A program made the translations under genes and the position numbers. Below the pieces are notes generated by a model that did not search any database, was not told where the DNA came from, and saw only the letters and a program-made list of their open reading frames with translations. This document shows positions 1,425 to 22,534 of a stretch of 64,000 nt of DNA, in pieces; within the stretch, counting starts at the first letter, position 1, and each line of letters begins with the position of its first letter. Origin of the DNA: Hydrolagus colliei (lineage: Eukaryota); the NCBI GenBank assembly GCA_035084275.1, contig CM068748.1, positions 6,262,001-6,326,000 on the forward strand, given 5' to 3'.

Positions 1425-1775
1425 AATTGTCGAGACTTCTCAAAGTGCTTCAACCAATTTGCACACAGCAATGACCCCATCTACCTGAACAGACAGACGA
1501 GACTTTAATAAAAACAGAGAGAGCTGGGAAAGCTTAGCAGGTCAGGCAGCATCTATGGAGAAAGGAAAATGAGTCAACATTTTGGGTCCATGACCCTTCA
1601 TCAGAATTCAACAGATGAGACTTTGGGTCCTCCAACGCTACCTCTGACATTGCTGCACACTTGCAGCTCTGCACTGGAGTGTCAGCCTAGGTTATATGAG
1701 AACATAGTCCTCAAATTGGCCCTATACCCACAACTTGCTAACCTGAGGGCGACAATGCTACCAACCGAGCCAGGC
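1425..1775 (-). mobile_element. Old DeuSINE (SacSINE1/AmnSINE2-like), internally deleted and split by a hammerhead mini-element
   Basis: Reverse complement gives a tRNA head ggctcggttggtagcattgtcgcc, then ctaggctgacactccagtgcag (Deu 5' part); it resumes after 1507-1610 with gtctgttcaggtagat...attgctgtgtgcaaattgg. Confidence 0.7.
1507..1610 (-). mobile_element. ~104-bp hammerhead-ribozyme mini-retroelement (Penelope-derived), copy 1
   Basis: Sense reads TGAATT CTGATGA A GGGTC ATG GACCC AAAA TGTT GACTC...gatgctgcctgacctgct...ctgtttttatt. Flanked by a 14-bp TSD acagaYgagacttt (1493-1506, 1611-1624). Confidence 0.85.
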
Positions 1776-1789
1776 ATTACATTTAAAAC

Positions 1790-1920
1790 ATCCACCCTTT
1801 TGTTCGTACCACCTTCCTTTGTGTTCCACCACCTCCCTTGCTCGGGTCCCAATCTGCTGTGTGAAGCAGTTTGTAATACCTCTCAATACGAAAGGCACTA
1901 TATAAATGTAAATTGTAAGT
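1790..1920 (+). mobile_element. L2-type 3' end fragment
   Basis: Pyrimidine-rich stretch followed by gtgaagcagtttg...gaaaggcactatataaatgtaa tail. Confidence 0.5.
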
Positions 1921-3474
1921 CATGCAGTTTCTTCTGTGCCTCCGTCCATTTCTTTGAATGGTGCAAAAATAGCTACTCCTGTTTGACGCATCACTCAACA
2001 ATTGCAACATTACATATAAGGTTTGGGGACTCGTTTTCCTATCAAATATATAAAAAATATATGATGGAGCTGCTCCATTATTATGCCCCACAAATCAGAC
2101 CTGGTAAATTTGCTGTTTCATCTTTTTTCCCCACTTTAGAATCTGCACTCCATGACTTTTTGAATTTTATAGTACTCAAGTGGCTTGTTAGCTGGTTTAG
2201 AAGTGGGCAGTATCCATTATCACAGGTGCATCATTATTGTCATCTGTACTTTTATTAACAAATTTTCACTGAAGAATTTCGGAATACTATGCCACCATAC
2301 ATTTTATATTTTAAATAATTAGTACACAAGTTTTCTCATTTAAAAAAGTAATGTCAGCAAGTTTATTTTAAAAACAGTTAACTTGAAATGAAATATTTTT
2401 ATAGTACACACATATTAATCAGCGTACCTCTTGAATAATTATTCATACTAACAAGCTAACCTTACTAATAAGTTATTTTAAGAGCTCAAAACAATTGTAC
2501 TTTTCTTTTATCTACTTCTAATCACACCAGTTGATTTATTTTCTCGCTACTGTAGTATTTGTCAAATGCAAGAATGATTATTATTACGATTACTTTACTG
2601 TAAGAGTGTGGGGGACATAGCTCAGAATTCTATTGAAACCTGAAATATGTGGTCCAAATTTAGTTTAGTTGTGCTTACTCTGAATCTCCGCTGTACACCT
2701 GTGTACTTTCTGTACAGTACCTGCTCTAACCCCTGTTCAATAGGCTTCATCTAGGTCCTTTGTGTGCCATTAGTTACAAGAGGCTCCTCCAGGTGGCTCA
2801 GTTTAATGGGAATAAAAATCAACACCATTTACATGCTCAACATTAGAACCATTACCATAGCCTTAATTGCATTCTGTAGTGACATTCATAACTTTACATA
2901 GTATATCAGGATAACTTCACAAGCAAGCAGGTAGGTAAGTTTTTTTTGTCTTTAGCCCAATTTACAACTGAATTGCATCAGCACTCAGTGGTATAGATTT
3001 TTCACTATAACATGCTTCACAGTACAATGGGTATATTCTATGTTCAGTTTGTTATAAACTGCCCAACTCAAAGCACACATTCTCACCTCATTTTTAAATC
3101 ACATAATTCTACTTAATCTTCTTAAATATTTTTGTTGGAAAAAAGTACAGAGAAAACAATAATCTGCAGCCCCCCACTGCCCCCCACACATATAGAAAAT
3201 TGAACAAAAAATACATGAAGGATTTGACTAAGCCACACGGCTTGGAAAAACAGATAATCACCAATAATACAATATGACATTCCGAGACCATCCTGCAGAC
3301 TTGCCAGACATGGGGTCCCATCGCACACAAAATGCTTTCAGTTACAGAATATACTGTCATTTCCCCAGAGAGCATGTCGCATGGATTATTCTTCTGCACT
3401 GTTTAAAAGGCCCTTCAAGGCACAACTGACAAGTGGCAGGTTATCAAGAAATGACTATGCAATAGAGTCATACA

Positions 3475-3900
3475 ACAACAACAATTTGCATTGATGTAGC
3501 ACCCGCCATGCCATTCGGCGTCTCAGAGCGCTTCACAATAGCGGAGCCTGGGGCCGAGCCAGGGGGAGGGGGAAGGTTACCATACACATGGTTGAACAGA
3601 AAGGTCTTCAGGCGCGACCTGAAAATGGAAAAGGAGGGGATGAGATGAAGGGATTGAGGGAGGGAGTTCCAGAGTTTCAGGGCATAATGTCTGAAGGCAT
3701 TGCCGCCAATGGTGGAGAGCTGGATTCGGGTGAAAAGGTGGAGGCCAGACCCAGTAGAGCAGCGGTAATGGGTACTGCTGTGAAGAGAGAGGAGGTTAGA
3801 GAAGTAGTGGGGTGCAGAGGAGTGGAGGGATTTAAACACAAGAGTGAGGATCTTGAAGTCGGTCTGCTGTATGACAGCATAAAACAATCTGACCAACAGG
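3475..3900 (-). mobile_element. 5'-truncated L2 LINE (ORF2 C-terminus, 3' UTR, TTG tail)
   Basis: ORF 3468-3959 contains DFKILTLVFKSLH..AP, GGNAF...LWNSLP and FRSRLKTFLF; tail gaagcgctctgagacg...atgcaaattgttgttgttg. Confidence 0.9.
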
Positions 3901-4034
3901 AGTGATGTAGCTGTAAAAATGAATTTCCACACAGAGAATGGAAAGTATGTGATATCCAAAGCTGTGATTCTCCGAGTTGTTTTTGGTTTGTTGACGAGTT
4001 AACATAGGAGTTAACCAAAACAACCACTATTGGA

Positions 4035-4137
4035 ACAAAAACAGAAAACGCTGAGAACACTCAGCAGATCAGGCAGCATCTATAGAGAAAGGAAAGTGAG
4101 TCAACGCTTTGGGTCCACGATGCTTCATCAGAACTCA
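4035..4137 (-). mobile_element. ~103-bp hammerhead-ribozyme mini-retroelement, copy 2
   Basis: Sense reads TGAGTT CTGATGA A GCATC GTG GACCC AAAG CGTT GACTC. Same ends as copy 1. Perfect TSD accactattgga (4023-4034, 4138-4149; 14 bp if the adjacent ca is counted). Confidence 0.85.
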
Positions 4138-4290
4138 ACCACTATTGGATGCCACTAAATAAAAATAGCTGATGGATAAAATACTATCTATGGAGAAAGT
4201 AAATTCAGTCAATGTTTTGGGTCCAGGAGCCTTCATCAGAATTCAACCACTTTTGGATACCACCGCATAAAAATAGCTTATGGCTAAAAT
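4079..4290. repeat. Diverged ~108-bp tandem duplication covering the hammerhead half of copy 2 plus its flank
   Basis: tctatRgagaaag...catcagaaYtcaaccactWttggatRccac...aaaaatagct.atgg.taaaat occurs twice. Confidence 0.75.
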
Positions 4291-4307
4291 ATTATGCAAG
4301 GTCATAC

Positions 4308-5045
4308 TTCACTCAGCTGATAGCACTTTTTCCTCTGAGTCAGATCGTTATGGATTCATGCACCCACTTCAGAACTTTGAGCTCAAAGTCTAGGTTGATT
4401 CCAGTGCAATGCTGAGGAAGTTCTGTGTTGTTCTGTCCTTCAGTTGAGACATTAAACTGAGGTCGCTCTGCCTGTTCAGCTGAATGTTAAAGAACCCATG
4501 ACAATAATAATAATCCTTGTATTTGATATAGCGCTTTTCACATCTTCTAGATGTCTCAAAGCGCTTCACAGAATATACTGTAAAGTGAATTGACTGAATA
4601 TATGTGGGTAAAACGTGGCAGCCAATTGTGCACAGCAGTGTCCCACAAACAATCATAGATTGAAATAACCAATTTATTATTGTTTTTGAGTGATTATTAT
4701 TATGCGTGTGGAGTAAGGAAACTTGCCCATTGTTTCGCCCTGTCTGGAATTGAACCCAGGTCTCTCATTTGTAAGGCAAATGCCTCTAACTAAGCTACAT
4801 GACTCCACTCCATGATACCATTCAAAAAGAGAAGGGAGTTTTGCCTCGTATCATGGACAACAATCTTCCAAATAATAGTTAGCAAATTCCTTTCAGGGCT
4901 GTTTGGATGACATTGCTGAGCATAAATGGGTTGCGTGTTGACCTGCAAATATACAATCATTACACATTGCAGAAAATGAATCTTGTGAGCACTTTGAGAT
5001 GTATTGACAATTTGATAAGGCATTACATCAAATGCAAAGATAATA
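4308..5045 (+). mobile_element. Old full-length DeuSINE interrupted by a younger SINE
   Basis: Head ctcagctgatagcactttttcctctgagtcaga; Deu core ccagtgcaatgctgagg...gagacattaaactgaggtc...aaagaacccatg; resumes at 4810 with ccatgataccattcaaaaagagaagggagtt...atcaaatgcaaag. Confidence 0.8.
4504..4808 (-). mobile_element. Younger tRNA-head SINE (head + ttgggcaagtttccttactccacac + Deu 3' part + TTA tail)
   Basis: Full-length, with A- and B-box-like head; TSD ccatgaca (4496-4503) / ccatgata (4810-4817). Confidence 0.9.
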
Positions 5046-6009
5046 CTACATTTGTACTAATTATGTGAGATATCATTTTATCGGAAATATTATATATTAA
5101 TTCCACTTTAGCTTCTTTTGAGATCTGAATAAATACAAGTACTGTACTTAGATGCAAAGGGTTTCAGATACAAGCCTATTTATTGGAGGGAATAAATTCA
5201 CACATTCAATATCAGCAGCTGTCCCCAAATTTGTATTTAATGTGGTCCCATAAACACATAGAAGGCAGTTAATGAATGTACTTTAGAAGTATGTGGGAAA
5301 ATATTAATGGAAATAAAATATAAAGATTTAGTAACATCACAAAACAGTTCAACTTATTTTCTTAACACATAGAACATCACATAAATATCAATTAAAATTA
5401 ATTAGAACGCACATTTTCTAAACATCTTTTCTAAGATGAAATAGGTGGTTTGTAGTTTCAACTGGATCTGCATCTCTCACCAGTGATACAAGAAACAACA
5501 AAATTACATTTACAGCATAGAGCACCTTTCACGTTGGGATGGTGTGTCTTTATCAGTATGAAATCTTTATCGTACTTTATTGCTGATTATGTAACAACAT
5601 TTTGTTTGCAATACATTTGAAAACTTGTAGCATATCACAATGACAAATTGAAATGAATAAAAACAAACTTTCAAGCGGTCTCAGGAGCACATTATCATTC
5701 CTATTACATTTGAGGTGTTTCATTGGTTATAAAAATATATCAAATGTTATCTGCATGTTTTCTCTGACTCAACCTCCAATAAGGGTTAATCAGTCAGTTG
5801 ATCCAGATAAACATGTCCGCGAAAGAAAATACAGTATTAGGTATAAATTCCAAAGGCTGTATTCAGCCAGTCTAATTACTTCAGAATAATTTGCCAGCTA
5901 AGAATATCTAAGTAAAGGGTCTACTTCAGAAGCAGCTACAAATGTCAATACACATGGTATTTACATGCCAGACAAAACATCTTGCTTCTTACTTTTTTTC
6001 ATTTGTAAA

Positions 6010-6630
6010 ACAGTGGGCATGATTCATTTTAACTAAATGAAAAGGTTTTTGAATGCAGTCATCAGTGATTTATTTGAACAGAAATAGTGATTTCTGTGTG
6101 ATGGTTGTGGAATCTGAAACACTTGAATCCTTGCAAAATGCGCTTTACAATCTACAAATAGGAGCGATGTAATTGGTCATTTATCATGGCTAGATTCATG
6201 CAACATTCCCCAAATTAAATGCAATTAGATTTAATTTGGATTCTTCAACAGTCTAAATGTGTTAGACCGAATGCCTGTGAATTTAATTGATAAGTAATGG
6301 ACTTCTATGAGGCAGAACAAATGGAATAAGTTGGCAACTCGGCAACCATTATGGAATACTTGTCTTTATTAGCGTAGGAACTTTGAATTCAGTGAATATG
6401 AAACATATACTTCTTGAATGTTTTGTATATTAGATGGTATAATAATAAATCACTGATAGAACTCTTTCAAATAAATTAAGAGTTGAAAGTGAAAATGGAT
6501 ATACTGTAATATAATATCCAGGTGCCAGATGTAAGAAGCTAAAAAGGGAAGATCATATGGTTAGTATTCTGCAAGCAAGAGCTCAAATGGATTGAAAGGC
6601 CTTCTTCATCCAAATCTCCTGTGTGATCTT
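6010..6630 (+). mobile_element. Heavily decayed CR1 RT and 3' end
   Basis: tatggaatacttgtctttattagcgtagga resembles tatgggatactaggctttataaatagggg of the young CR1; ends with gagctcaaatggattgaaaggccttc, like the CR1 3' UTR. Confidence 0.5.
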
Positions 6631-6741
6631 AGTTCAATTAACAAGTTTTCTTTAGAAAACTAAACGTACACCACAGCCACGAATGGGACCCATCCTCCAA
6701 TACATGATATATTGTGTACATAGTTCAATTTGGGTTCTAAT

Positions 6742-7073
6742 ATAATTATAATAATCTTTGCATTTGATATAGTGTTTTATATTGCCTTTACAAATAAATA
6801 AAAAGAAGAATCCTTGCATTTGAACACGGCTTTTCACAGAATATACTGTACTGTAAAGTGAATTGTCTGTTTATTTGTGAGCGATACACTGCAGTCAATT
6901 GCGCACAGCAGTGTCTCACAAACCGTTGTGGATTGAAGTGACCAATTTATTTTCTTGAGGGTTTATTATTAGTAGTGTGGAGTAAGGAAACTTGCCCAAG
7001 ATTTCGTCCTGTCATGAATCGAACGTAGGATCTCTTGCTTGCGAGGTGAGTACTCTACCAACTGAGCTACAGA
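6742..7073 (-). mobile_element. Younger tRNA-head SINE, full length, with an extra tail copy
   Basis: Head tgtagctcagttggtagagtactcac...gttcgattc; linker gggcaagtttccttactccacac; TTA tail. Confidence 0.9.
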
Positions 7074-7429
7074 ATTAAAAATGTAATGTTGAGTGTGTAT
7101 ATTAAGCACTATGGTTAGAAATCATTAGATATTAGACCCTAATGTGCTTACAAGAACTTTATTCCTCATCGATTGATAATTTCACAAAACAGAATGTATA
7201 CATTTAAATAACAGAAGAATTTTCCCACTAATTCGGATACAGTTCTAATTTATCTAATTGATTAGATTACTAAAAAAAATGTTTTTTCATATAAGAGGAA
7301 TGAATACATATAATAGACTGGGGCAAAATTTTCATATAACTTGTTTTTCATGCATCAGTCACATGTAGATGGCATCACTGTACATCAAGCTCAGTAGAAT
7401 AATACAGTTCTCAGTATTGTACAATTATC

Positions 7430-7830
7430 TAAGGTTGATGAGAAATAGCTGAAATATTTAAGCCATTGATGTTGCAAAACCTGATGCAATCTGACACAAA
7501 CAACAGAAAGAAAAGGTGCAAGTATCTCTTCAGCACCATTATAAATGTCAGATATTCAGGAATGAGTCATCTTTTCATCTGCACAGATACCAGAGTTGAC
7601 AGAACTGTGGAATGTATAGAAACCCTAAATCTATCAAGAAATTCTCCACTGGCACTAATGGTGTTCACAGCACCATAGATAATGCAACCAGAGTTATACT
7701 TCCAAGAGGAAAGAATACAATTAGATATTTCTGATTTACACCTTGGTATTATTACAAATATGGTTGCCCTTTTCCTCCTCACTGATATAGAAATAAAAAG
7801 CAAGTTACACTTCCACAAACTGAAAAGAAC
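7430..7830 (-). mobile_element. Decayed Penelope-like RT fossil
   Basis: Ordered motifs across shifting frames: LFISIS-EEE (cf. LYTSIPHEEG); NCIL..WKY (cf. NYFLFxGKY); MGAV...FLDRF (cf. AMG...FMGKF); LWYLCR*KDDSFLNI* (cf. LWxRYIDDIFLIW); GAEEILAPFL (cf. GxEExLxxFL). Confidence 0.45.
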
Positions 7831-7899
7831 ATTGGAACCAAAACATAATAATCACCCTTGCTTTGTTTTGTTATTGTGCCTGATCACATTGTTAACGTG

Positions 7900-8165
7900 T
7901 CTCAAAGTGAGTCTTTTTGTGCGTCACTCATCGGCAGAACTGGCAAGGCCAGACCACTCACTGGGGGCAGCGACTCATTGCATTCAGCTCCCGATAACCC
8001 TGCAAGCCAAAGCCCAAACTTGTAGTGTGATCCGAGCTGGACAAGCACTGCTCTCAATGGCATGCTGTGTCCCTTGAAGGTAGAGAGTGCGCATTCCAAC
8101 AAATATCACTGGAATTTCCATGTGAATGGAACTCATGTGAAAGGCACTATATAAATGTAATTTTG
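7900..8165 (+). other. Unclassified GC- and CpG-richer segment ending in an L2-type tail
   Basis: GC-richer than its flanks with several CpGs; ends gtgaaaggcactatataaatgtaa. Confidence 0.3.
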
Positions 8166-9474
8166 CCTTTGTGTGTTTGGTTACTCTTAAGCATGGTGAT
8201 GGATTCTAAATGCAAATACCTTTGAAAAAGTAATTAACTTTAATGTTATTTGTGCTTATGATGCAATAAGGTGATAAACAGACTGACTCCTAAGAGGTTG
8301 CCTAACCAACAAGAGAAGATAATGTCTAATAATTTCCTGTTAGAGTGATAAGAACCTTCTGTTATGCTGTCAGAATATATTTGTCTCTGTAAACCAAATG
8401 ATAAGATGTTGCCAGAGTATAGTGCTTCCAGTTCGGATAAAAATAATATACATTATCTTTGTTATATGATTGGAAAAAAAGTTTCTGTGTATTGGGACAT
8501 GAAATCTGGTTGAAGATTTGAACAATAAAAATCCTAAACACACCACAATTCCCAACATGTACAGAACAGCCTCTAACCAAAGGACAGCAGTGGAGGATTT
8601 TACTAATAATTTCATGTTGCTATGGCAACAGTTATCTGCCAAAAACCCAAATCATAGACAGATTAAAATACAGATTAAAAAGTAAGGTTGTTGATCAAGT
8701 GATAAATGGAGCCTGTCCAACAAAATTCTTATATAAAGAATATATTGCAGCAATCATAATTTTACTGACTTATTGTTTGTGCTTTTCAACCTTTTTTCAC
8801 ACTTTGTTAGCTTTCACATCCACACAATTAGCCCTTTTCAAAACATGGCAAATTGGACAGCTTTAGATGTTCACATCTGAAAGTCACAATTAGCACATTG
8901 AATCTGGATAATGAACAGCAAAAATTGGTCCCCATTCTGTCCTTTAATTGAACTCTGCAATGTGTTCATGAATGTCTTGACCTTCTGGGTTCTTAAACAA
9001 ACTTCTGCTTGATATTGCATTTTAACCAGCCCTTGCATTTCCCATTAAAACAGCGGTGTTCATCCTGAATCTCATGGGCCAATGTTAAATATTGGGATCA
9101 CTTCTAAACAAAGCCCAGATTATCCTTTTACATTCGCAGATATTTCAGATTTGTGACAGAGACTGAAATAACAATGACTCAGTCAGCAGTTTTAGTTATG
9201 GCAGTGTCTGACCTTACAGTATTTAAATTCGTATAGTCTTTTTTTGGGGTTGGCATCCTCCAATCCTTTACTGCCATATCATGATTTTACAAAAAAAAAG
9301 CTGTATGTGTAATTCATATTATCTTCCTTTCTGTAAATAAAACCTGCACTGTTTTTGAAGGTTTGAAAAGTGCTCTCAACTTTGCACTTGAGTAACTTGA
9401 AAAGGGCAAGATGATTTGGATAGGATGAAAATAACAAGTCATCAACTAAAGCAAGCAGCAACTCTGAATGGTTC

Positions 9475-9565
9475 AACAACAACAACTTGCATTTATATAG
9501 CACCTTTCATGCCGAGAGGACATTCAAGAAACGTAAAAATTCTTGCATTTGATATAGCGCTTTAT
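9475..9565 (-). mobile_element. Two adjacent L2/SINE 3' tail remnants
   Basis: caacaacaacttgcatttatatagcacctttca and ttcttgcatttgatatagcgc. Confidence 0.6.
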
Positions 9566-10659
9566 TTGCTCTCGTCTCCCTTTTACATTTAACTGGCAAC
9601 TGTAACTATGTGGGAAGAATATCTAAGTGGGTGTTCCTGCAGGAGAAAGACTTCCCTACAGATATCATCAACCAATGCTTACATTTGTTGGATTTTGTAG
9701 TTTAAAGAAATCACTGGTGGAAATTCAATATTCACCAGCTCTTAGACCGGAGATGTCAGACATCCATAAGTCCACTTACCGAATGTCTGTGGACAATTCT
9801 GGCAATAGATAGAAAACTGATGTTATTCCCTGGTGGAGTCTTTGCTAAGAATGGAATTTAGTAAACTGGAGCAACACATAAGAGATTTAGACTGATGCTT
9901 TGTATCCTTATATACCACAATGCTTTAAATCTTTAATGGAGTGAAGTTTGCTGTTCAGAATTCCCCCAGTTAAACTGCGTAATTTACTTATTACTAGATG
10001 TTAAAAGACACTAGGAAGTCTTAAATTCCCTGAGGCCAAAATTAAGAGAAACATAAGAAGGATGAAGTAATGGAATCATCACAACTTTAAAGTGAACCTA
10101 AAAGGGAGAAAAGAGGTATCACTGAGGCTGGGAATTTGCAAAGATTCAATCATGCATAACAGGTGGATTCACATGTTTAAAGTTTACCTGATGGAGGAGC
10201 AGTTAACGATTTAAACTTTTGATGGATAGTTAATATATAATATTATTCTGTTATTTGTGATGATGAAGTGAGAACTATGTAGAATATTATATAAATTTGA
10301 CTGACTAAATTTTCCTAAATCTAACGATTATGCACATATTAATCTTGAACCAATCTGGCTCTGACATTTTTATTTTTCAAACTAACCCATAGAAAAGCAA
10401 TAGAACTAGTTCTTGGAACAAAGGGGTACAAATTGTGACTGGTGATTGTTAATTAAAATTAACATGAGTGAACACTGATGTTAATTGAAACATAGATGAA
10501 CAATACACCCTGTCAGAGTTCCAGTGAGCATAGTGTAATTTAATTTACTGGAAGGAATCCCCACTCAGATTGCTTATTAAGAAATTGTGTTTGAAACTGC
10601 CAATATTAGACCCATACTGGAGAATTTGATTACAATTTAGGACTATAGACAAATAGGAA

Positions 10660-11095: not shown

Positions 11096-11127
11096 GTCGT
11101 CCACCCACAAAGATACAGTCAATTTAC

Positions 11128-11810: not shown

Positions 11811-11850
11811 TGTTGGCAAAATGTTGAGGATAAGTGAAGGATCCCGTTAC

Positions 11851-11975: not shown

Positions 11976-13579
11976 TAACCAAATTAATAAACGACCCAGT
12001 TGTAGAAGTTCCACTGTCACTCGGGAAACATTCCAACCAGCAAATGTCAGCGGGACTGACAGTTATTATTATTTATAGAAAATTATGTGAACAATTATGG
12101 GGAAGAGAGAAATTAGACAGGCTAAATCAGAACGAAGGAGAAAGAAAGAGAAAAAGGGGGTTAAGGGAGAGCAGGAAGGTTAAAGAAAGAATGCCATCAT
12201 TTCTATTTTTCTATTGGATATTAATGTCTTTACAGAGCAAGGTACTGTATATAGAAAGTGTTTCTGTGCACAAGAACAAATAAATATTTTAGTAAAAGCC
12301 TATTTAGTAAAACGATTTGAGATTCCTGCAATCATGTTATTTATGGCCTAGCTATTTTTAAATTTGTCAACCATTCAACACAGATTTATTATGTACATCC
12401 ACTTCAGCATCACTGTGCAATATTAGACAGTTTACTTGATTAAAAAAGTAGCATAGTTATCGATTGTGTGTCATAACAAAAACCTGCTATACAGGTTCAA
12501 AATTGTGCTCTAATTAAACAATTAACTTTTGCATGGAACACTCAAACTGAAATTCCCAGCATACATGGGAAGGCCACTAAGCAATTAAAGGAAAATAGGC
12601 ACACATCAGTTTAATAACCCTATAGTCACCTGCTGTCCGTCTTTGGCTGCCAAAACCGTGTACAGTACCTTATTAATGAGTAATAAAACTGAATTGCTGC
12701 AATTTAAATGTTGTACATTGCAATCAGTGCATAATAGGAGGTTATCAAGACTTTTTGATGACTAAACATGAGAATAGGGAGCTGGCAACACATATGTGAG
12801 AGACAAACACAGGCACACTCATCTGGCCCAGTTTCATTTAAGCCTCTTGAAGCTCACAGAAAAGAAGGTTAATGAAAAAAGCTTTAGCAAAAGGCTACCA
12901 TCACTGGATAAAACAAAAATCTCATTTAGAGATGGATAATCAGATTTATATGCCATTTCCCCTCAAACCCTCTGGTTAGGAGTAGCCTGCTGGTGGTATT
13001 TTATGTCATCTGCAGTTCTGACATTGGATGAAACCATCAGAACAATTTTTAATTTGACCTATATTTCTATTATTTCATGATTCTCTCATTAACAATTGAG
13101 TGAAATACCAAACAGATCATCTTCCTTGTGGCCATGAAAAAAAAACGCTGTGCAAATTGATAAAAGATTAACTCGTATAAAGCTAAAGGCTTGCTATTGC
13201 ACGAAGCTCATTCTTGCATATGTATCTCAGCCCTAGATATGGCAGGCTCTACCAACATTAGAAAAGGAGGGAGGAAAATGATTAGTAGAAGTTAAGAAGT
13301 TAAAATACTAAAATCCAGGGATTAAAAGGGTAAAGCATTGGTAAGATTGAAATAACGGAGTGAAGGTGATATATCAAATTATATCAGTATAGTTACCATA
13401 ACATATTCACAATCAAACTCTGTACACAGGATGTCACATACTTCTTCACAAACCCAGAAAACTGCAAGATGAAAGAGCTAGGCTTCTTGATTATAAATGA
13501 TCCATGATATGTTCTAATCATTGATGAGTGAAAAAAATGTAACTAGAAAAACAGAATACTAACAGAAGTTCTACTTGGA

Positions 13580-13755
13580 GGACATTTTAGAGGGATTTCC
13601 TCTTTGATCAAGCTTATGGCCACTTTCCCTCCCCCATCTCCCCCCCACTACCCTCCACCCAACTCGGAATTGGGCCAGGGTTAAGCCCTCTGAGATGCTA
13701 TGCTGCTTAGAGGGCACCATATAAGTGATAAGTGTAAGTTGTTGCTGTTGTTGTT
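13580..13755 (+). mobile_element. L2 3' end
   Basis: ttcctctttgatcaagcttatggc (FLFDQAYG), C-rich UTR, aagccctctgagatg...gtaagttgttgctgttg. Confidence 0.7.
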
Positions 13756-14319
13756 TTTCCCACAAGCATGTTGAACAGTTTTACTATTCTTCCTAGATTG
13801 GCTGTGGAACAACCAGTGTACTATTTCCGTAAGCTTGATGCAATGATGAATGATTACCTCAATTATTAAATTAAACACAATTAATACATTTCCACATGTT
13901 TTTGTTTGTTTGGTTTCATTTTTGTTTCATTTTCTCCAAAAGGCTGGGAGTGGATGGGACCAGTGCTATGGTTCTAAGTGCCCCTTATAGCATTCTACAA
14001 ATGAGAGCTTAGAGACTGATTGTTAATAAGTCACAGAAGTCAACACATGGCGGCGATCAGACAAACCCTTTTTCACTCTAAACCAAATTCCTACATCAAA
14101 CCATAAATAATTGCAAAATGAGAAGTGACTATTTTATCCAAACAATCAATTTCTTCCACAGATTGTGTATAATTTCTGACTTAAAATTGTTTATTTAATC
14201 GTTTCAAGGAAATTCATAATCACAGGCAAAGGTTCCAAGACGATAGTGCTTTTTGATATTTCTTCCTCATCTCTCCTTAAGGAAGTCTTTTAGGAAAATC
14301 AGGAAAGCAGTTAACATTG

Positions 14320-14590
14320 CAACACTGATCTCAGAGTGGGCTATAAAGTGATAACCGGTTGAGAGAAAATAAAACTGAAAATATGTTCAGGTACATCAAG
14401 ACTGCACGATAAAAGGGCACAGGTTATGAGTGATGGAATGGCAAGTTTAAGGTGGATACCAGAAGCAATTCATTTCAACAGAGGATAAAAAAACAGAATA
14501 ATTCATGGGGAATATGATTGAGGCAGGTACAATTGATCCTTTAAAAAGCAGCCTGATGGGAGACTAAGAGGGTAAACTTTCTAAATACTG
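14320..14590 (+). mobile_element. Old CR1 3' fragment
   Basis: aaagggcacagg...caagtttaaggtggataccagaagcaattcatttcaacagagg...gtgatt-like attgaggcaggtacaatt...tttaaaaagcagcctgat matches RGH..FFTQRV..VEAG.I..FK..LD. Confidence 0.65.
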
Positions 14591-16029
14591 TAGATGAAAT
14601 CATATGTGCTAAATGATTTTATATGAAATCATCCAAATCTCTCTTCTGATCAAAGTTGTGATGTAACAAACAATGACATGTTTATGTTTTTTTGCTTTTT
14701 AACAATCAAGCAACCATGCTGTTCTTTTTTAAAAAAAAATCCACTTAACACACCAAAGTTGTTATATCTGGACTATGTATGATATCTTGAAAAGTGGGAA
14801 AGAATTATTTCTTCAGTTAGGATTACTCATTTAATACTGTATAACACTATTATGAATGGTGTATTGAAACAATTGAAACAAAACTTATTTAAACAAAAGA
14901 CTCAATACAAAGGTCAACCAACATGATTAAAAAATGGTTCTACATTGTGTCTCGAGTTCCTTTGAATCTATTTTATATAATCTCAGTGAAATCTGGGCAT
15001 ATTTATCCAATTCATTTCATGCACTGCTGTATCTGCACATTTTTTTTGCTGAGGGAGGTTGACTTTCAACTCAGTAGTTTCACCAGATTGTTGGACACCT
15101 GAACACCAGTCTGCTAGATGCACAATACATTTGACAAAAATGCTATATTTCATAATTATAAAGCATATGACATACATTTTCCTCCAGTAAACACTTTGAC
15201 TTGAAAATACAGAATTCAACATACATAATATCTTGTGACTCATTGTAGTTATGTACTTTGTTCTTTTTGTGAGTGGATCAGCAGTTTCAAGACGTTTACA
15301 GATTTCAGTGAAAAGACCTTCACTTCTATGAACAATAACAATTTATTTCATTACTGATTTCTTCAGGATTATTACGTAGAAGAAAAGTTGTATTATTAAA
15401 ATTATCTTCCTGCAGAACTTTGATACCTAAGCCAAATGATTACAATCAATCTATTCAAATGGAGGATAAGAAGTGGTGATAAAGGACTATGTTTCAATTC
15501 AGCAGTGAACTAAAGAGGACACTGGAGAATCCTAGTGGCCTACTTTACTGCTGATATAATTTGAATGATTGACGGTGCAGGCATGTTTGTGAAATGCAGG
15601 AATAAAAATTCTGTTTGAATTTAGCAAGAGTTTGCCAAATGTGGTGGAGTAATAATAATTAGTAGTAATATTTGATATTACTCAATCTAGAATTAAATTA
15701 GGTGAAAAAAGCAATAATTGAACCTGTTGTGGAAAATCCCATATTTCAGCCCCAAAAGTTATTTATTTAGCATTATTGACAATTGGATAGAGTGTAACTC
15801 CATTTTTTAATATATGTATGTATGTATGTATTGAGTAATGATCAGCACTCATGTATTGCAGGACAATGCTAACTTATTGGCATTGGCAATTCAATAAATC
15901 TTCAGTGATGGGCGTGATGACTGATGCTACTCAGCAAAAAAATCTCTGAAACCCCAGACAATGTACTCTAGCTTCCAAACCTTAGCTATAGCAAAACAAA
16001 AGGTTAATAAGGATCAATTGGCAATTAAA

Positions 16030-16150
16030 TTATTAATAATACTTACATTTTATATAGTGTTTTTCATCTCGGGAGTATGTCTCAAAGCACATCAGAAAAT
16101 ACACTGCAAAGTCTGGTAATTGTATGTTTTGTAGGTGAACATAGCAGCTA
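16030..16150 (-). mobile_element. SINE 3' part
   Basis: aataatacttacattttatatagtgtttttcatctc...gtctcaaagcac. Confidence 0.7.
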
Positions 16151-16799
16151 ATTGCAGTGTCCCTCAAACAGTCGTGAAGTATTAGATATTGCACATATGA
16201 TGATAGATGGCTGGAAACAGGCATCTCTTTGAACAAGTGTGCATTTTTGTAGAATCTTACAGATTAGAAACAAATTCTAAGACACCTCTGAAACACCTTC
16301 CTCACCCTTTTCTTTGATGGTGTCAGCATACAGCTACTTGGTGTACTGTTGCACGTATGTACAAGATAATGCAATGTTTGGATAGGCAATTTTTGTTGGG
16401 TAATTCAGCTATAATTGTTTTTACTTATTAGCGTTTTTAACACTTACAATTTAATTCCAACATAATCTCTGGATTTATCAATGAGTTGATCAGACTTGGT
16501 GATATTTCTGTTTGATGTGCTGTAGATTTGTGTTCGTCTGAGATCTATACAAGAAAGAAAAAAATCAATAAGGTCTTAATCAAAAAATGAAACCAATATC
16601 AAGTAGAACTAGTATTGATTCCATCACTGTAGTATCTTGACGATTATACAACTCGGCCCTCTGAAAGGAACAAGAACATAGGAGTGGCTGTTACAAACAT
16701 GGAGGTTACAAACATACAAAAACTAAGGTTCTGTGTATATGTAGTGGAAGGTAATGATGCATCTTAAAAAGTGAACAGTCTGAAAGAAATTACTAAAGT

Positions 16800-17480
16800 A
16801 CTTAATCATTGTAGACAGTGGGTTGTTGTGATTCCCATACTTGTGGCCTTGTGTAATAAATTTCATCTGCTTTGACAAGGAAAGAAAGGGACCTGACCAC
16901 AACCTCGTGGTAAAAGTAATGGGGATTTCAAAGAAGAAAGATTATAACTAATCAATGGAATAAATTTATATTTCAATGAAGTGAAGAAGAGTTCTAGTAC
17001 TTGGGTACCAATTTAACCGCTAAGGAATCTAATTCTTTCCATGCTATATATCTAAATGTAATTATACGGATCCACATTGACAGTGAATCACATATCTTCT
17101 TATTGCAAACAAGCTAAGCATATCCTAAGGTTCTGCATCTATATACTGTACATCAACATTTAAAAATATACTGTATTACCAGGTATTACATCCTGATCAC
17201 TCTCAATCAGTACAGTGAAGGAACCATTCACACAAATCTATGAAAGTGACTAACTATGCAGTTGAAGAAGAGCACGATAAAATTATTCGTATAGATAATA
17301 TAACTTAGCTAGTATAGGAAGATAATTAATTAAACTGATAATATTTGGTCTTGTGTGGGGTGACAATGATGATGACAAGAGCTAAAAGGTGAATGTATTC
17401 AGTTTAATATACAAGGTTTGGCTAAAGACATGTATACAATACTTTATAAAAGGTATTGTAGTTGTTATTATTTAGATAAC
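16800..17480 (+). mobile_element. Very decayed CR1 RT fossil (tentative)
   Basis: gctttgacaagg (AFDK), cctaaggttctgca...ctgtacatcaac (PQGS...YIN) and cagtttaatatacaag (QFN..K) appear in the correct order. Confidence 0.35.
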
Positions 17481-18872
17481 ACTAGGCATTGATTAACATC
17501 TCTTCTAGTCAGCTGTTCCATAATTAAGACAATGTTGTGCACCTTGAAAATTCAATAAAACGTTAGAAAACCACAGTTCAATCATGGGTTTTTTTCTGTG
17601 TGAGAAAACGCACTCACCAAATGTTTGGGGTACAATTTCATTTCAGACTACAAATTGAATTCAGTGTAAACCATTATAGTCTCTATTACTGCATAGAAGC
17701 ACCAATCTCTGGGTGAATAAATTGCTATTCTTCAGAGTAGTTGTGCAAATTACAGAGTGTTGTAAACAGCAATCAAATAAATATTAATCATATCATAGAT
17801 GATATACACATAAAGATGTGCCTGCAACATAAAATCATTGCACTATCTGAAAAGATAAAAATGATGAATACGTATTGGAAACTAAAGGAAAGGAAACGAC
17901 AGTGAAGTGAATCTTTTCTGTGAACCGACCTATAAAGAAAAACAAATGGAACATATTTGAGACCGATGAGAGGATGCTCTAGATTAAAATACATCAACAT
18001 TTAAGATTACACTGTATTTTTTGATAACATTTTGAATGGTAAAAATAGTATAACGGATTTTAGGAAATGACCATTTAAATAAATAGTGCAAGCATCACAG
18101 TACCCTGTAAAGACACGATATAAAAAAGTTTGAATTATATTAGGCTATTCAAGAGGATTTATAATTCCAATATGTTATTATACAAACTAAAGGATTGCCA
18201 GTGGACTATAACATCTAGGTTGGTAAAACTTTTTTCAATCTTGTTACATCTGCCTTTATTTTCCTTTACTACTAATTCCCTTCTATCTAGTTACATGTGT
18301 GGAATCTGTAAGGATATGTGCGAATGCGGGGAGGAGTTTGGGCAATAAATTGAATAATTGAATGTATTGTATGCTTTGCTTGAGTGGTATGTAGAAATTT
18401 ACTGCACTGATTTATTGCATTGGCTTTTAACACAATATTTTTCTATGGGTAGTCAGATGCTTCTTTCTGCTTCTGGTTCCTTCACTTTTACCTGATCCTT
18501 AGGCCCATTCAGAACTGTTTTACTGTGTGTAGGTTGAAGGATTACTGCATACCTGAACCAAATAGTACTGCTTTGTTAGACAATATCACTTTTCACAATT
18601 TGTCAATGAAATTACATTTTCAGCATAGATATGCAGTATCCAATGAACACATCTGGTAGTGACTTATTTATTGTTTTATAGGAGTTAACTGCCTCATTTA
18701 CAGTATGTTAAGGTGTTCTGCAATAATTGGATTGCTAAACTTTATGAATAGGAGTTACATTCTCAGGAATCTTTGCATGAGCATTTCCTCTGTTAAAGGT
18801 AAAAATGGCCAAAAATCACCTGATGAATTCATAAAGGAGCCGATGGTTTGAAACCAGCTGGGTGATTTATTT

Positions 18873-19115
18873 GAGTCCTGTAGCTCAGTGCTTAGAATAC
18901 TCACTTCACAAGTGAGAGACCTGGGTTCGATTCCCGGCAGGGTGAAACCTTAGGCAAGTTTTCTTACCTCACAGGTCACTCAATCCACAACTACCTGTGG
19001 GACAACTGGCTGCCACATTTCGCCCATAAAATAAATTGGATTCACTATTTTCTGTGAAGCGCTTTGAGACAGCTAGAAGATGTGAAAAGTGCTATATCAA
19101 ATGCAAGTATTACTA
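18873..19115 (+). mobile_element. Younger tRNA-head SINE with an internal deletion
   Basis: gagtcctgtagctcagtg...ctcacttcacaagtgag...gggttcgattccc; tail gtgaagcgctttgagac...atcaaatgcaag. Confidence 0.9.
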
Positions 19116-19224
19116 TATTGTTATTTACTATTACTTAGGAAGAGGCGTCATGGTTGGCAGAAGTAAAGAAGGATTTTAAATACATAGCAAGCAAATTTGA
19201 GGCAAAGTGTCCAATACAATTCAT

Positions 19225-19285
19225 ATAATAATCCTTGCATTTGATATAGTGCTTTTCACATCTTATCGACGTCTCAATATGGACA
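19225..19285 (-). mobile_element. SINE tail
   Basis: ataataatccttgcatttgatatagtgcttttcacatcttatcgacgtctca. Confidence 0.75.
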
Positions 19286-19664
19286 AGAGATAAGGTACAA
19301 AGAGACATTCCATCTCTTAGAATGACCCAGGGCAACTCATTGTTTCATTTCATCAACCCTCTCTGACATACTAATGTTACTCATAATCTCTGCAGTATCT
19401 AATGAATGATGCATGTGAGATAGTCTGCATATACTAGAGCTCTATAAAATACTAATCAGTTGTACATTTATGAAGTATGTAAATAATGTTTTACGAGTCA
19501 CACGTAGTTGATTTATTAAAGATTTTTATCCACCAAAATGACTTCTAAAAACGGAATAGCATAATCTTGCTTCTACAAAATTTGGAAGCCAATAATATTT
19601 CTAGCAGTTGGTTTGACAATTGGAGTTGCTCAGTTGCAGTTATAGAATATGTTTTAGATAATAA

Positions 19665-19790
19665 TAGCAATAATTCTTGCATTTGATATAGCACTTTACA
19701 TGTCTTCTAGATGTCTCAAATTGCTTCACAGAATATACTCCAAAGTAAATTGACTGTGTACGTATGGGCGAAATATACAATTCAAATCAT
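19665..19790 (-). mobile_element. SINE 3' part
   Basis: taattcttgcatttgatatagcac...gatgtctcaaattgcttcacagaatatac...tgggcgaaat. Confidence 0.75.
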
Positions 19791-20689
19791 GGCATTCCTA
19801 CTTTCTTTCATTAACTATACCCAGACGTTACAAAGTAAATACAAGATATGTAAAATAAATTGCTACAATAGTGATATTCAAACCCATTCTTACAATAATA
19901 TCCCCCTAAGAACTATAATCAGTATTGTATTATATTATGCATCAGACATACCAAGCAATTGGTATAAACACAGTTTCTTTAATTAATTTTCAATTTCTAG
20001 ACGTTCTAATTGCCACATAATGAAGGCACCTGATTTTTCAGGTGCTCGTAGGACTAATTAAAAATGACCTCTAAGAGCTATGCCAGAGATGAAAGAGGCA
20101 AAGACGTTATCTCGGCATCTGCTATGTTTAGCTTCCTCTGTGTGCTGGAGATTGAATAATTGGAATCTTTAAAGTCTAAAAAGCAGACATTTAATTAACA
20201 TTGTCTTAACATTAAGACAGCAAGGCGTAAATATACTAATGTAAATTTCTCAAAGAGGAAAAATTATTTTTTGAAAAATAGTCCTTAAGCAACATTACAA
20301 ATCAGTTCCACCATGAATTATAAATGAATACACTTCTCTCTATTAAATACAATGGTGAATCACTCTTTAAATTAAAATACAATCACATTTTGGTCATATC
20401 AGGAACCTATTGTGTGAGATGTCAGGATATTGTGAGATTCAAAATGACTGTAGTGGTGAAATATAAAAGATAATCTGACTTTAACAAGACATGACTGAGA
20501 AGAACTTGTGAATTAGGCTGCATGGGGTGTTAAGCATTGGAAGCCAATCATGGAGGCACTCAGAAATTTCCCGTTATCCCATCTTGTCAGTCCACCCATG
20601 AACTTGAACAAGATAAGATCCAGGTGCATGTATGACCATAATGTAAATGATGTTATGCTATATCTCTGAGGAAATACAATGAATTATGG

Positions 20690-20945
20690 AAAGACACCAA
20701 ATATGAAAACAGAATACAGTAGATATATATTCTCTGAGGCTGAACGGAACTAATCTGGAAAATATGTTGAGGGTTGAGTGACATTCAGGCAAATCCTTTT
20801 CTGAAGGGGAAATAGATATGGGGGAAGTGATGGATGCATCTGTGTTTATGGAGAAAGTATAAGTTATCCATAAAATAGTCACTGAGACCCATAAAACAGT
20901 CACTAAGAAGCTGGAGTATTTGAAGGTTCATAAAACAGGTACTAA
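20690..20945 (+). mobile_element. Decayed CR1 ORF2 fragment upstream of the RT
   Basis: gcatctgtgtttatggagaaa (ASVFMEK, cf. ASVFTKE) and aagaagctggagtatttgaaggttcataaa (KKLEYLKVHK, cf. KRLMSLKVDK). Confidence 0.5.
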
Positions 20946-21780
20946 AATAATTCAGTAAATGTAAGGGTGAAAATTCTTATGACATTGACTTGAAGCCAGT
21001 ACAATAAAAACACAGCTATTAAAATGCAGAAGTCTGTCTCTGGAAACTATCAGTCTGCTAGTGGAAATTTATACAGGTATGGTGAAAACATGTTGAAAAC
21101 CAACAACACTGGATGAGAGACAAGGAATTTTTTAATATCCTTGATATTTGGTATAGAGCTTTTCTCTACAGGAAAATAACCCAAAGTGCTTCATAGGAAA
21201 TACTATAAAATGCAGTGCCATTTATTTGTTCTTTAATATGTGGGTGTCATGGCATACAACAAGCTGAATGATGTGGAGTGAAAAAAAAACTAGTGGCTCA
21301 CATAATCTTCTGCACTTAGCGTGTCAATGACAGTGGCTAGAATGCTTGATTTTTCTGGCAGCAACACTGGCAAGACGTCCATGTTTGTGCCTGAAACACA
21401 AGAATTCCTGCAGCTGTAACTCAACACCTGTATCAGTCTGAGCTTTTTGCATTGTACAAATAGTGGAACTTTGTGATATACTTGTGCTAGCCATTTTTTG
21501 CTTCTATGTTTGTACATAAACTTAACATCACAACAACAACAACAAAATTACACATGTATAATGCCTTCCTAGGTGACTGAACCCACATCAGGCCAAGGAA
21601 ATGGTCTAAATTAGATCATTGGGTAGCAACACACATTTTCTATGGCTGTGCTCCCAGCAACAACCACAGTCAATTTACACTTGTTACATTTTTCCAGCTG
21701 TTATTTCACTTAATATACCAGAAAAAAATTCTATCTTGTGTTAAAGTTATGCAGTGTGGAAACTTGTAGCTGAATTATAC

Positions 21781-22023
21781 AAAACACAAAGTACTACAGA
21801 TACTGGGAATCTGAAATAGAAGTTGCTGGAGAAACTCAGCAGGTCAGGCAGCATCCAAGGAGAAAGGAAAATGAGTCAACTTTTCGGGTCTACAACCCTT
21901 CGTCAGAACTGGGGCTTGTTATTAGAGCCCCAGTTGTGATGAAGGGTTGTAGACCTGAAACATTGACTCATTTTCCTTTCTCCATGGATGCTGCCTGACC
22001 TGCTGAGTTTCCCCAGCAACTTC
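21781..22023 (-). mobile_element. Hammerhead mini-retroelement copy 3, with an inverted 5' duplicate
   Basis: Perfect 16-bp TSD tgtagctgaattatac (21765-21780, 22024-22039). Arms 21819-21916 and 21926-22023 are 98-bp inverted repeats (7 mismatches, 9-nt loop). Longer 3' tail ttcagattcccagtatctgtagtactttgtgtttt. Confidence 0.9.
21873..21911 (-). ncRNA. Minimal type-I hammerhead ribozyme, best-preserved copy
   Basis: CAGTT CTGACGA A GGGTT GTA GACCC GAAA AGTT GACTC: core CUGANGA and GAAA intact, stems I and II pair, one substitution in the helix III palindrome. Confidence 0.6.
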
Positions 22024-22534
22024 TGTAGCTGAATTATACTATAGTTTGGATTTATGCAGTATCTTGCTTGAGTGAGTAATAATAGTAGAGACCGATTACT
22101 GATAGAAGAGACAAAATAGCTAATAATAATTTTATTCTATAACTACGAAGGAAAAATTAATCATTATAAACAAATTATATCAGACTACAATTACCAAAAA
22201 TGAATGAAACTAAGCATCCTCCAAGAAAAAATGTCTATTGTAATAAAGTTCTACATATTGAAAGCCGATTTTGTTTATTCATGATGCATATGATATGCAA
22301 TTAAAATTCTTCTGCTCTTGTTTGTACTAGATAATGTTCTGGTTTTACAATTATTGCACAGAAAATTGAATCAATCCATCTCTTTGAAACTTTTAAATTT
22401 GATCATTTCTATGTCATTAGCTGAGTAACATAACAAATAACGTGAATTGTTAATCTGTTAGTTGAATATTGGTTAATTCAGTTTATTGAATAGGATTTGT
22501 AAATCCCAAACCATTTACACACCTCATCTAAGAA

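Follow-up and report, generated by a model that had tools for sequence, protein, structure and literature searches.

Hammerhead-bearing short insertions in a 64-kb window of Hydrolagus colliei and their relation to Penelope-like retrotransposons

A 64-kb window of Hydrolagus colliei DNA (the whole stretch that was analysed) contains several short insertions carrying a hammerhead-ribozyme motif, which raises the question of whether they form a distinct and possibly uncharacterised SINE-like family, as a preliminary description had proposed, or are pieces of a known type of element. The five copies observed in the window are very probably old, inactive 3'-terminal (pseudo-LTR) fragments of a Penelope-like element (PLE) retrotransposon family common to sharks, rays and skates, resulting from three insertion events and one local duplication. 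They are PLE 3'-terminal fragments and not a new kind of element. The hammerhead motif carried by the fragments is already known for the Penelope class, and the unexpected part is the common start of the short copies.

Copies observed in the window

Three insertions, each flanked by its own long direct repeat, were observed at 1507-1610 (c1), 4035-4135 (c2) and 21781-22023 (c3), with target-site duplications (TSDs) of 14, 14 and 16 bp, respectively. All three had been described before, with the end of c2 placed at 4137 rather than 4135 as found here. The earlier observation that c1 and c2 share both ends was reproduced by pairwise alignment, with an identity of 84%. The features of c1, and of c2 with its tandem copy (c4), are as follows.

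1493-1506, no strand: left TSD of c1, ACAGACGAGACTTT, 13 of 14 bases identical to 1611-1624
1507-1610, minus strand: c1, solo PLE terminal unit of 104 bp, bounded by the hammerhead 5' edge and the short 3' end
1571-1609, minus strand: c1 hammerhead motif, GAAUUCUGAUGA-A-GGGUC..GACCC-AAAA-UGUU-GACUC, dead core (G12 to A)
1611-1624, no strand: right TSD of c1, ACAGATGAGACTTT, 13 of 14 bases matching the left repeat
4021-4034, no strand: left TSD of c2, CAACCACTATTGGA, 14 of 14
4035-4135, minus strand: c2, solo PLE terminal unit of 101 bp, both ends as in c1
4098-4135, minus strand: c2 hammerhead motif, dead core (G12 to A), helix II damaged
4136-4149, no strand: right TSD of c2, CAACCACTATTGGA, 14 of 14
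4078-4295, no strand: 108-bp tandem duplication, 2.0 copies, 83% matches, holding the hammerhead half of c2 and 48 nt of host flank
4186-4245, minus strand: c4, duplicated partial c2 copy with the fifth motif copy of the window (G12 to A)

The c4 motif copy and the 108-bp duplication had been overlooked in the preliminary description. The repeat unit holds 48 nt of host flank including the c2 TSD, and the tandem is therefore a segmental duplication that followed insertion; since it carries the c2 host flank along, c4 is not an independent insertion.

The third insertion consists of two copies head to head, with an arm identity of 92.5%, and its arms extend upstream of the hammerhead motif by 19 nt or more.

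21765-21780, no strand: left TSD of c3, TGTAGCTGAATTATAC, 16 of 16
21781-21916, minus strand: c3 left arm, with 19 nt or more of sequence before the hammerhead, stopping at the long 3' end
21781-21807, minus strand: 3' 'tail' extension of 27 nt, on the left arm only, homologous to long tails in shark, ray and skate
21873-21911, minus strand: left-arm hammerhead motif, both core boxes intact (CUGACGA, GAAA), palindrome of helix III lost (AAGU)
21917-21925, no strand: c3 loop, TGTTATTAG, 9 nt, head-to-head junction of the arms
21926-22023, plus strand: c3 right arm, stopping at the short 3' end
21931-21969, plus strand: right-arm hammerhead motif, dead core (C3 to G), helices II and III CpG-decayed
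22024-22039, no strand: right TSD of c3, TGTAGCTGAATTATAC, 16 of 16

No Pol III-type head (tRNA, 5S or 7SL derived) was found in the units, as had been stated before; the Rfam tRNA matches in the window were observed only at 7004-7076 and 18874-18945, outside the units.

Sequence and fold of the hammerhead motif

The CpG-corrected consensus, GAGUU-CUGACGA-A-GGGUC-GUG-GACCC-GAAA-CG-UU-GACUC, has the form of a minimal type-I hammerhead, in agreement with the preliminary description, including the CUGANGA/GAAA core and the extra A after A9; ViennaRNA folded it with helices I and II as drawn. The core boxes C3-U4-G5-A6-N7-G8-A9 and G12-A13-A14 are present in this consensus and in the c3 left arm, the only one of the five copies with an intact core; c1, c2 and c4 carry G12 to A and the c3 right arm C3 to G. 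A pattern search (CTGATGAAGGGTCNNNGACCCGAAA, up to 3 mismatches) gave 4 matches in the window versus 0.00 expected, while a strict minimal-hammerhead descriptor returned one intact motif, the c3 left arm, versus 0.02 expected from mononucleotide shuffles. By a hand count on the copy alignments, 11 of the 19 differences within the 41-nt motif were CpG to TpG or CpA, with CpG sites making up ~20% of the motif, so that an earlier statement that most departures are CpG transitions was roughly right.

Helix II (A-GGGUC/GACCC) is closed by a G10.1-C11.1 pair, and a single unpaired base separates 10.1 from position 9. Helix I is formed from both ends of the motif (type I), with GAGUU/GACUC in the window, AGCU/AGCU in the bamboo shark and GUC/GAC in the rays. 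The palindrome at 15.2-16.2 reads A-CG-U in the consensus; c2 and several of the ray and skate copies keep its CG, which has elsewhere decayed to UG, CA or AG. Across 12 copies from four species, 77% of the helix cells pair (82% in helix II, 73% in helix I) versus 19-49% with the partners slid, and five helix pairs are changed on both sides, two of them in helix II and three in helix I. This covariation was not significant in a shuffle control, where 104 of 500 shuffles reached the observed score.

An Rfam hammerhead search, proposed in the preliminary description, gave no match in the window with any hammerhead model, neither at the gathering score nor at E <= 10. This is expected for a motif without helix III, and PLE hammerheads of this kind required a special descriptor (PMC4209133). 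The hallmarks of PLE hammerheads given by Cervera and De la Pena (PMC4209133) are the extra base after A9, the G10.1-C11.1 pair, a palindromic ACGU replacing helix III and a short helix I. All four are present in the consensus, and every structural peculiarity listed in support of a Penelope-type motif is among the published ones. The motif is a PLE-type minimal type-I hammerhead, for which cleavage after GUU would be expected only as a dimer, through the ACGU palindrome.

Origin of the copies and of their ends

A tblastn search with Poseidon_Ac and 120 PLE proteins as queries did not detect a PLE ORF in the 64-kb window, so that an autonomous element is linked to the copies through related genomes and not through the source genome. 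Homologous modules are present in stingray, skate and bamboo shark. Stingray copies were matched at E = 2e-12 by an HMM trained on the copies of the window and the bamboo shark, and a stingray reference used as the query matched all four window copies (E = 3e-8 to 1.5e-4) together with about 45 skate copies. On the minus strand of one skate locus (L023), 17653-16040 holds remnants of an RT and GIY-YIG ORF (tblastn E = 7e-42) with the motifs YLRYIDDCF and IYCIRCSRCQLIYIGETKRRL; a pyrimidine-rich UTR of ~315 nt comes next, then the hammerhead (15690) and the short end (15597). A stingray locus (L016) has degenerate RT and EN remnants, the ORF end, the UTR, the hammerhead and the tail in this order. 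At least nine copies in the related loci are extended upstream, and related copies reach ~300 nt or more in this direction, through a 3' UTR into the PLE ORF. The module downstream of the RT/GIY-YIG ORF in skate, together with the published hallmarks in the consensus, identifies the copies as PLE sequence, and the position of the module in skate and stingray agrees with the earlier proposal that a Penelope RT/GIY-YIG protein may have mobilised them. A bamboo shark locus (L015) considered as another ORF link was rejected, a different PLE family being inserted beside the tail copy.

The 3' ends were observed at two alternative sites, 27-45 nt apart. At least 14 inverted pairs were found in the related loci, and one arm was long and the other short in 8 of 8 inverted pairs examined. 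PLE insertions have been described with a tail of 30-40 bp that is often confined to one end, and with an adjacent inverted 5'-truncated copy (Craig et al. 2021, PMC8557442), while Poseidon of Anolis has two internal RT start sites, with both strands cleaved and extended (Frangieh et al. 2024, PMC11167929). In the Poseidon of Anolis sequence, 85-92 nt separate the hammerhead cut from the longer start site downstream of it, and in c3 the distance is ~93 nt. Since two alternative 3' ends and one-arm extension of inverted pairs are the known PLE 'tail' signature (PMC8557442, PMC11167929), the copies are PLE terminal fragments, and the proposal of a distinct SINE-like family was not upheld, with c3 and the related copies also extending upstream, the latter into the PLE ORF.

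The 5' ends are less simple. Of the seven solo copies bounded by TSDs, five, drawn from three species, share their start to within a few bases; it lies at the hammerhead 5' edge, and the common terminus is the A of YYAGTY, with which helix I begins. The 5' terminus of c1 and c2 is also that of a stingray solo (R1, L016 404-546) with a perfect 14-bp TSD and of two skate solos (L022 5615 and L020 28998) with 14-bp TSDs, and with this recurrence the shared end of c1 and c2 is no coincidence. The discrete 5' end claimed earlier held for these solos, whereas other copies run upstream, the detectable 5' ends ranging over >300 nt, or end within the hammerhead motif (L018 8163 and L017 13908). The 5' ends are thus neither random nor uniformly discrete. 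Random 5' truncation would not give a common start, so the simple 'truncated tail' picture leaves the shared end unexplained; the common start may mark where an RNA begins or a separate non-autonomous lineage, and the data agree both with a by-product formed from all PLE transcripts and with such a lineage. Read by eye, the 5'-edge motif of each of the three lineages agrees with YYANWYY, the initiator consensus.

The anatomy of the copies, their homology to those of other elasmobranchs and, in related genomes, a physical connection with a PLE ORF are shown here; we infer ribozyme activity and the enzymology of insertion, the steps of the latter being drawn by homology with studied PLEs. The PLE RT/GIY-YIG protein would nick both target strands 12-16 bp apart, a stagger that would produce the TSDs. 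Reverse transcription would begin inside the PLE RNA, ~65 or ~95 nt downstream of the hammerhead cleavage site, with the two neighbouring start sites giving the short and long ('tail') 3' ends, and would copy back through the hammerhead. In the solo units c1 and c2 the cDNA would stop at the preferred position at the hammerhead 5' edge. In the inverted pair c3 a second cDNA, primed from the other strand, may have joined head to head, with the long tail on one arm only.

The common start could instead mark the ~100-nt unit as a discrete, non-autonomous family of retroposons headed by a hammerhead, with transcription from its member copies and mobilisation through a PLE RT/GIY-YIG protein acting in trans. 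The two ends common to c1 and c2, the same terminus in the stingray and skate solos, and the grouping of five of seven solos near one start although 5' ends range so widely all agree with such a family, as does the initiator match, D. virilis Penelope having an internal initiator-type promoter (PMC2377424). We consider it unlikely, however, as the module runs on into the UTR and PLE ORF in longer copies such as that of skate L023, the supposed start is overrun by c3, and two copies end inside the motif. While c1 and c2 differ from c3 at several positions, no sign was found of solo lineages separate from ORF-bearing masters. The initiator match, and with it the putative promoter, may be incidental because the AGUY part is also constrained by helix I, and an ordinary PLE mRNA would give a discrete 5' end just as well if reverse transcription began at its 5'-proximal tail site and ran to the cap.

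It is very improbable that the copies represent a non-LTR retrozyme, whose tandem hammerhead units give transcripts that self-cleave at one ribozyme after another, circularise and return to DNA. The c2 and c4 motifs lie in direct orientation 108 bp apart, skate has head-to-tail module arrays (L017 6989-7423) and arrays of a 68-nt unit (L023, 14239-14836 and 5271-5341), and vertebrate retrozymes, one chondrichthyan's included, reportedly derive from PLE pLTRs (bioRxiv 10.64898/2026.07.22.740005). Yet the c2/c4 unit includes host flank and a TSD, the G12 to A change is already present in both of its cores, neither c1 nor c3 is tandem, and the predicted cleavage site is the start of no copy. No head-to-tail array of element-only hammerhead units was found in the window, its sole tandem being the one at 4078-4295. 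We give almost no credence to an origin without any ribozyme-related element, whether as an ordinary repeat that matches CUGANGA/GAAA by chance or, at c3, as a microRNA-like hairpin. The absence of an Rfam hammerhead match, the four of five copies that lack an intact core and the microRNA-family Rfam matches on c3 (mir-2766, 41 bits versus a gathering score of 60) would suit this explanation, but these matches are below gathering scores and spurious, stemming from the hairpin formed by the inverted arms of the 243-bp insertion. The motif and helices are moreover conserved from shark to skate, the departures are those expected of CpG decay, and the features agree point by point with the PLE hammerhead definition.

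Comparison with known systems

As PLE terminal fragments, the copies resemble the PLE minimal hammerheads (PMC4209133) in their type-I topology and CUGANGA and GAAA boxes, the unpaired base between 9 and 10.1 and the G10.1-C11.1 pair, the 5-bp helix II and 4-6 bp helix I, and a helix III of which only A15.1-U16.1 remains, flanking a palindromic CG, so that the motif would act as a dimer. In both cases the motifs are mostly dispersed and single or in opposite-strand pairs, but the pairs described there are 100-700 bp apart while the inverted motifs of c3 are separated by only ~25 bp. No description of the elasmobranch family was found in the PLE hammerhead literature surveyed.

Animal non-LTR retrozymes (PMC7229834, bioRxiv 10.64898/2026.07.22.740005) are likewise small non-coding units with a type-I hammerhead and monomeric 'solo' copies, and share a PLE pLTR origin and dependence on PLE protein (Cervera and de la Pena 2020; Li, Clavereau and Pollet 2026). 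They are defined, however, by head-to-tail arrays and circular RNA intermediates, whereas the window copies are solo or inverted. The schistosome Sm-alpha and Sj-alpha are also SINE-sized dispersed repeats with a type-I hammerhead but, as cited in PMC6765202, their helices are canonical with tertiary contacts and their promoter is placed before the ribozyme, from which the window units, with no Pol III head, differ.

The PLE insertions of PMC8557442 and PMC11167929 are matched here in the two 3' ends 27-45 nt apart, the one-arm tail in all eight inverted pairs, the hammerhead 65-95 nt upstream of the 3' end and the TSDs of 12-16 bp. Neither report mentions a sharply preferred 5' end at the edge of the hammerhead, as observed here. 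The tail is GU-rich in sense here and AC-rich in those PLEs, and the hammerhead, which overlaps the start codon there, lies here past the ORF stop and ~300 nt of UTR.

Hammerhead-bearing insertions in the window

The preliminary description had reported three insertions with hammerhead motifs, each between target-site duplications (TSDs), and reading the loci directly bore this out with minor coordinate corrections:

1507-1610, c1, flanked by ACAGACGAGACTTT and ACAGATGAGACTTT
4035-4135, c2, flanked by a perfect 14-bp TSD, CAACCACTATTGGA
21781-22023, c3, a two-arm inverted pair flanked by a perfect 16-bp TSD, TGTAGCTGAATTATAC

Local BLAST found five copies in the window, namely c1, c2, both arms of c3 and an additional copy at 4186-4245. 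The c3 arms share 92.5% identity and face each other head to head across a 9-nt loop. The additional copy sits within a 108-bp tandem repeat (4078-4295; 2.0 copies, 83% matches) whose unit takes in 48 nt of the host flank of c2 along with its TSD, and it is therefore a later segmental duplication rather than an insertion. A retrozyme dimer at 4078-4295 was rejected, as the second direct-orientation hammerhead arose by duplication of half of c2 plus host flank. A 229-aa ORF on the + strand (1569-2258), which starts inside c1 and runs antisense to the hammerhead, matched nothing in Pfam and is most likely spurious; the open antisense frame of the element (LSRSGSI..GERKMSQ) likewise found no match in a protein search.

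The hammerhead motif is far from chance: the motif pattern matched 4 times in the window where none was expected, and a strict minimal-hammerhead descriptor found one intact motif (c3 left arm) against 0.02 expected. The CpG-corrected consensus strand of all motifs was GAGUU-CUGAYGA-A-GGGUC-GUG-GACCC-GAAA-CG-UU-GACUC, and its ViennaRNA fold reproduced both of the drawn helices, I and II. CpG transitions accounted for 11 of the 19 departures within the 41-nt motif, counted manually on the alignments. Across the four species sampled (12 copies), helix cells were paired in 77% of cases, compared with 19-49% when partners were slid, and five helix pairs had changed on both sides; the column-shuffle control for covariation was not significant in this set, so the covariation support is modest.

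The Rfam hammerhead models gave no match in the window at the gathering score or at E <= 10, and Cervera and De la Pena required a special descriptor for such motifs (PMC4209133). Sub-threshold Rfam matches were to microRNA and snoRNA models, caused by the c3 hairpin and UGAUGA, with tRNA-like matches elsewhere in the window. The latter (7004-7076, - strand, and 18874-18945, + strand; 30.7 and 46.1 bits to the Rfam tRNA model, several stems mispaired) are probably the heads of tRNA-derived SINEs and not tRNA genes. The ribozyme structure originally drawn was correct, and the peculiarities listed with it are the published general pattern of hammerheads in Penelope-like elements (PLEs): a base between 9 and 10.1, G10.1-C11.1, a palindromic 15.2-16.2, a long helix II and a short helix I. 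In that study most of the motifs were scattered single copies, described as "probably related to truncated PLEs", and some formed pairs on opposite strands (PMC4209133).

Elasmobranch relatives and a Penelope-like ORF

No PLE ORF was found in the window, where the reverse transcriptase (RT) ORFs (33165-34553 and 37844-38695) belong to two CR1-like LINE copies (32849-34553 and 37844-38695, both + strand). The C-terminal ~250 residues of these copies are nearly identical, which indicates a young family, and their best database identities, 60-67%, were to proteins of bamboo shark, stingray and skate, in keeping with an elasmobranch source; an exact look-up of the LINE ORF matched no record. Four further CR1-like RTs (P0015, P0037, P0241, P0259), 64-67% identical to the window LINE, were deposited as Klebsiella pneumoniae or Proteus mirabilis on contigs of 1.2-1.7 kb; one clusters with a bamboo-shark protein at >= 90% identity, and they are probably elasmobranch DNA contaminating bacterial assemblies.

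Relatives of the hammerhead elements were reached from the LINE search through the elasmobranch proteins to their genomic loci, giving one locus of bamboo shark (L015), one of Atlantic stingray (L016) and seven of little skate (L017-L023). Profile searches placed the module, that is the hammerhead with its 3' terminal sequence, in all of these alike. An HMM from window and shark copies matched the stingray copies at 2e-12, and a stingray reference matched the window copies at 3e-8 to 1.5e-4 as well as about 45 skate copies. Metagenome matches to GATGCTGCCNGACCTGCTGAG (14 loci) were all chance with no hammerhead nearby, and a longer pattern had no match in bacterial or archaeal genome contigs or in viral contigs.

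The link to a PLE was observed on the minus strand of skate L023, where RT and GIY-YIG ORF remnants (17653-16040; tblastn E = 7e-42) carry the motifs YLRYIDDCF and IYCIRCSRCQLIYIGETKRRL and terminate in ..PGGMNIEFSQLS. Beyond this ORF lies a pyrimidine-rich UTR of ~315 nt, after which come the hammerhead (15690) and the short 3' end (15597); the same order recurs in degenerate form in stingray L016. We rejected L015 19654-18851 as a GIY-YIG ORF with this tail, as it represents another PLE family inserted beside an older tail copy. This unrelated second bamboo-shark family (L015 18956-19905) is an inverted pair with TSD ATGAGCAATAAAT; it retains an intact 191-aa GIY-YIG ORF end, with the stop codon placed inside the loop of the family's own hammerhead (CUGAGGA-U-GUCACC..), and its AC-rich 3' ends are about 35 nt apart. 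A PLE ORF opened through the tail by the conserved AUG in AGAUGCUGCC was also rejected: the frame is open in c3 and the ray, but in the copies of skate and bamboo shark it is closed or shifted. The Poseidon_Ac protein query returned no elasmobranch protein among its best 120 matches; PLEs have been reported from every vertebrate lineage studied, elephant shark among them (PMC4350176). We conclude that the window elements are fossil 3'-terminal fragments of a PLE family widespread in elasmobranchs, and these loci should be masked in annotation as Penelope-like fragments, not as ribozyme genes or microRNA hairpins.

3' ends and inverted pairs

The copies have two alternative 3' ends. The short end (..CCAGC(N)10-20) was used by c1, c2 and the c3 right arm. 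The long end, 27-45 nt beyond it and containing ..UUCCAGCAUCUGCAG.., was used by the c3 left arm, where the extension is 21781-21807. Inverted pairs make up at least 14 of the insertions, and one arm was long and the other short in all 8 pairs with readable ends among the following:

Window: 21781-22023
Bamboo shark L015: 603-822, 5677-5903
Stingray L016: 17253-17700, 15575-17204
Skate L017: 7815-8003, 8657-8828, 9012-9178
Skate L019: 13506-13665

This pairing would be expected if each target strand primed at its own RT start site. In Poseidon of Anolis, Frangieh et al. found RT initiation at two internal sites next to each other, with cutting and extension of both target strands; RNA cleaved by the hammerhead did not serve as substrate (PMC11167929). 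The longer start site there is 85-92 nt past the hammerhead cut, and the c3 long end is at about 93 nt. No copies beginning at the predicted cleavage site (GUU|GACUC) were found, and cleaved RNA was therefore not the template. The copies also match the PLEs of Craig et al., in which 5' truncation is frequent, an inverted, 5'-truncated copy lies next to the element, and a tail of 30-40 bp is often present at one end only (PMC8557442).

Some inverted pairs are centred in the helix II palindrome. Two independent skate insertions with different TSDs (L017 8657-8828, centred at 8751/8770, and 9012-9178, centred at 9104/9121) share an identical head-to-head junction position, a palindrome (GUUUCGG/CCGAAAC) to which helix II and the GAAAC box both contribute, which suggests snap-back or template switching at this hairpin. 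Skate loci also contain head-to-tail arrays, one with a 68-nt unit from GAAACGUC to the short 3' end at two loci (L023 14239-14836, 5271-5341) and one of three units, repeated every 150-185 nt or so, that takes in some 30 nt of sequence upstream of the hammerhead (L017 6989-7423). These are retrozyme-like or satellite-like derivatives of the module.

The recurrent 5' end

The 5' ends were heterogeneous, with at least 9 copies extending upstream into the UTR and 2 stopping within the motif. An automated TSD search matched 76 of 294 mismatched control pairs, with false positives frequent where copies adjoin, and TSDs were therefore counted only if they consisted of non-element sequence and abutted both ends. 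Five of the seven solo copies with clean TSDs begin within a few bases of one position, the A of YYAGTY that is the first base of helix I, each with either microhomology of 2-4 nt or two additional bases at the junction:

Window: c1 and c2
Stingray L016: solo copy R1 (404-546), perfect 14-bp TSD
Skate: L022 5615 and L020 28998

In each of the three lineages the site agrees with the initiator consensus, and Penelope of D. virilis has an internal initiator-type promoter (PMC2377424). That the shared position is a defined RNA 5' end is proposed purely as a hypothesis, since in D. virilis 46 nt plus a 75-nt intron separate the start from the hammerhead downstream, and since helix I partly forces the initiator match. 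The same position may instead mark an RT stop, or processing at an apparent 3' splice site. The splice-like feature is a polypyrimidine tract ending in CAG directly upstream of the hammerhead in long copies:

Stingray L016: 15680-15690, 17590-17600
Skate L018: 6700-6712
Skate L021: 5215-5227
Window: 21912-21916

This arrangement recalls the D. virilis Penelope intron, reported to end at helix I, and the same bases also fit the initiator motif. The proposal of a separate SINE-like retroposon family was unsupported by the tests that could be made, although a modest form of it survives through the recurrent 5' end.

A stronger reading, which we offer tentatively, takes a defined RNA 5' end further: the 100-145-nt module may be the RNA segment from an initiator-like YYA(+1)GTY transcription start to the internal RT start sites of the PLE, with the solos as "strong-stop-like" full-length cDNAs primed at the 5'-proximal copy of the RT start signal. 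So read, the module would be analogous to the retroviral R region. Since it would carry both the start site and the RT recognition site, such a unit could in addition spread as a non-autonomous retroposon headed by a hammerhead, the smallest of its kind known. The 5' end that recurs at the hammerhead edge could show where PLE transcription starts, or could point to a minimal derivative that is non-autonomous. The elasmobranch copies are moreover a clean natural record of three points so far shown in vitro for one lizard element, namely the two internal RT start sites, the use of both target strands, visible in the long and the short arm of every inverted pair, and the exclusion of hammerhead-cleaved RNA as template.
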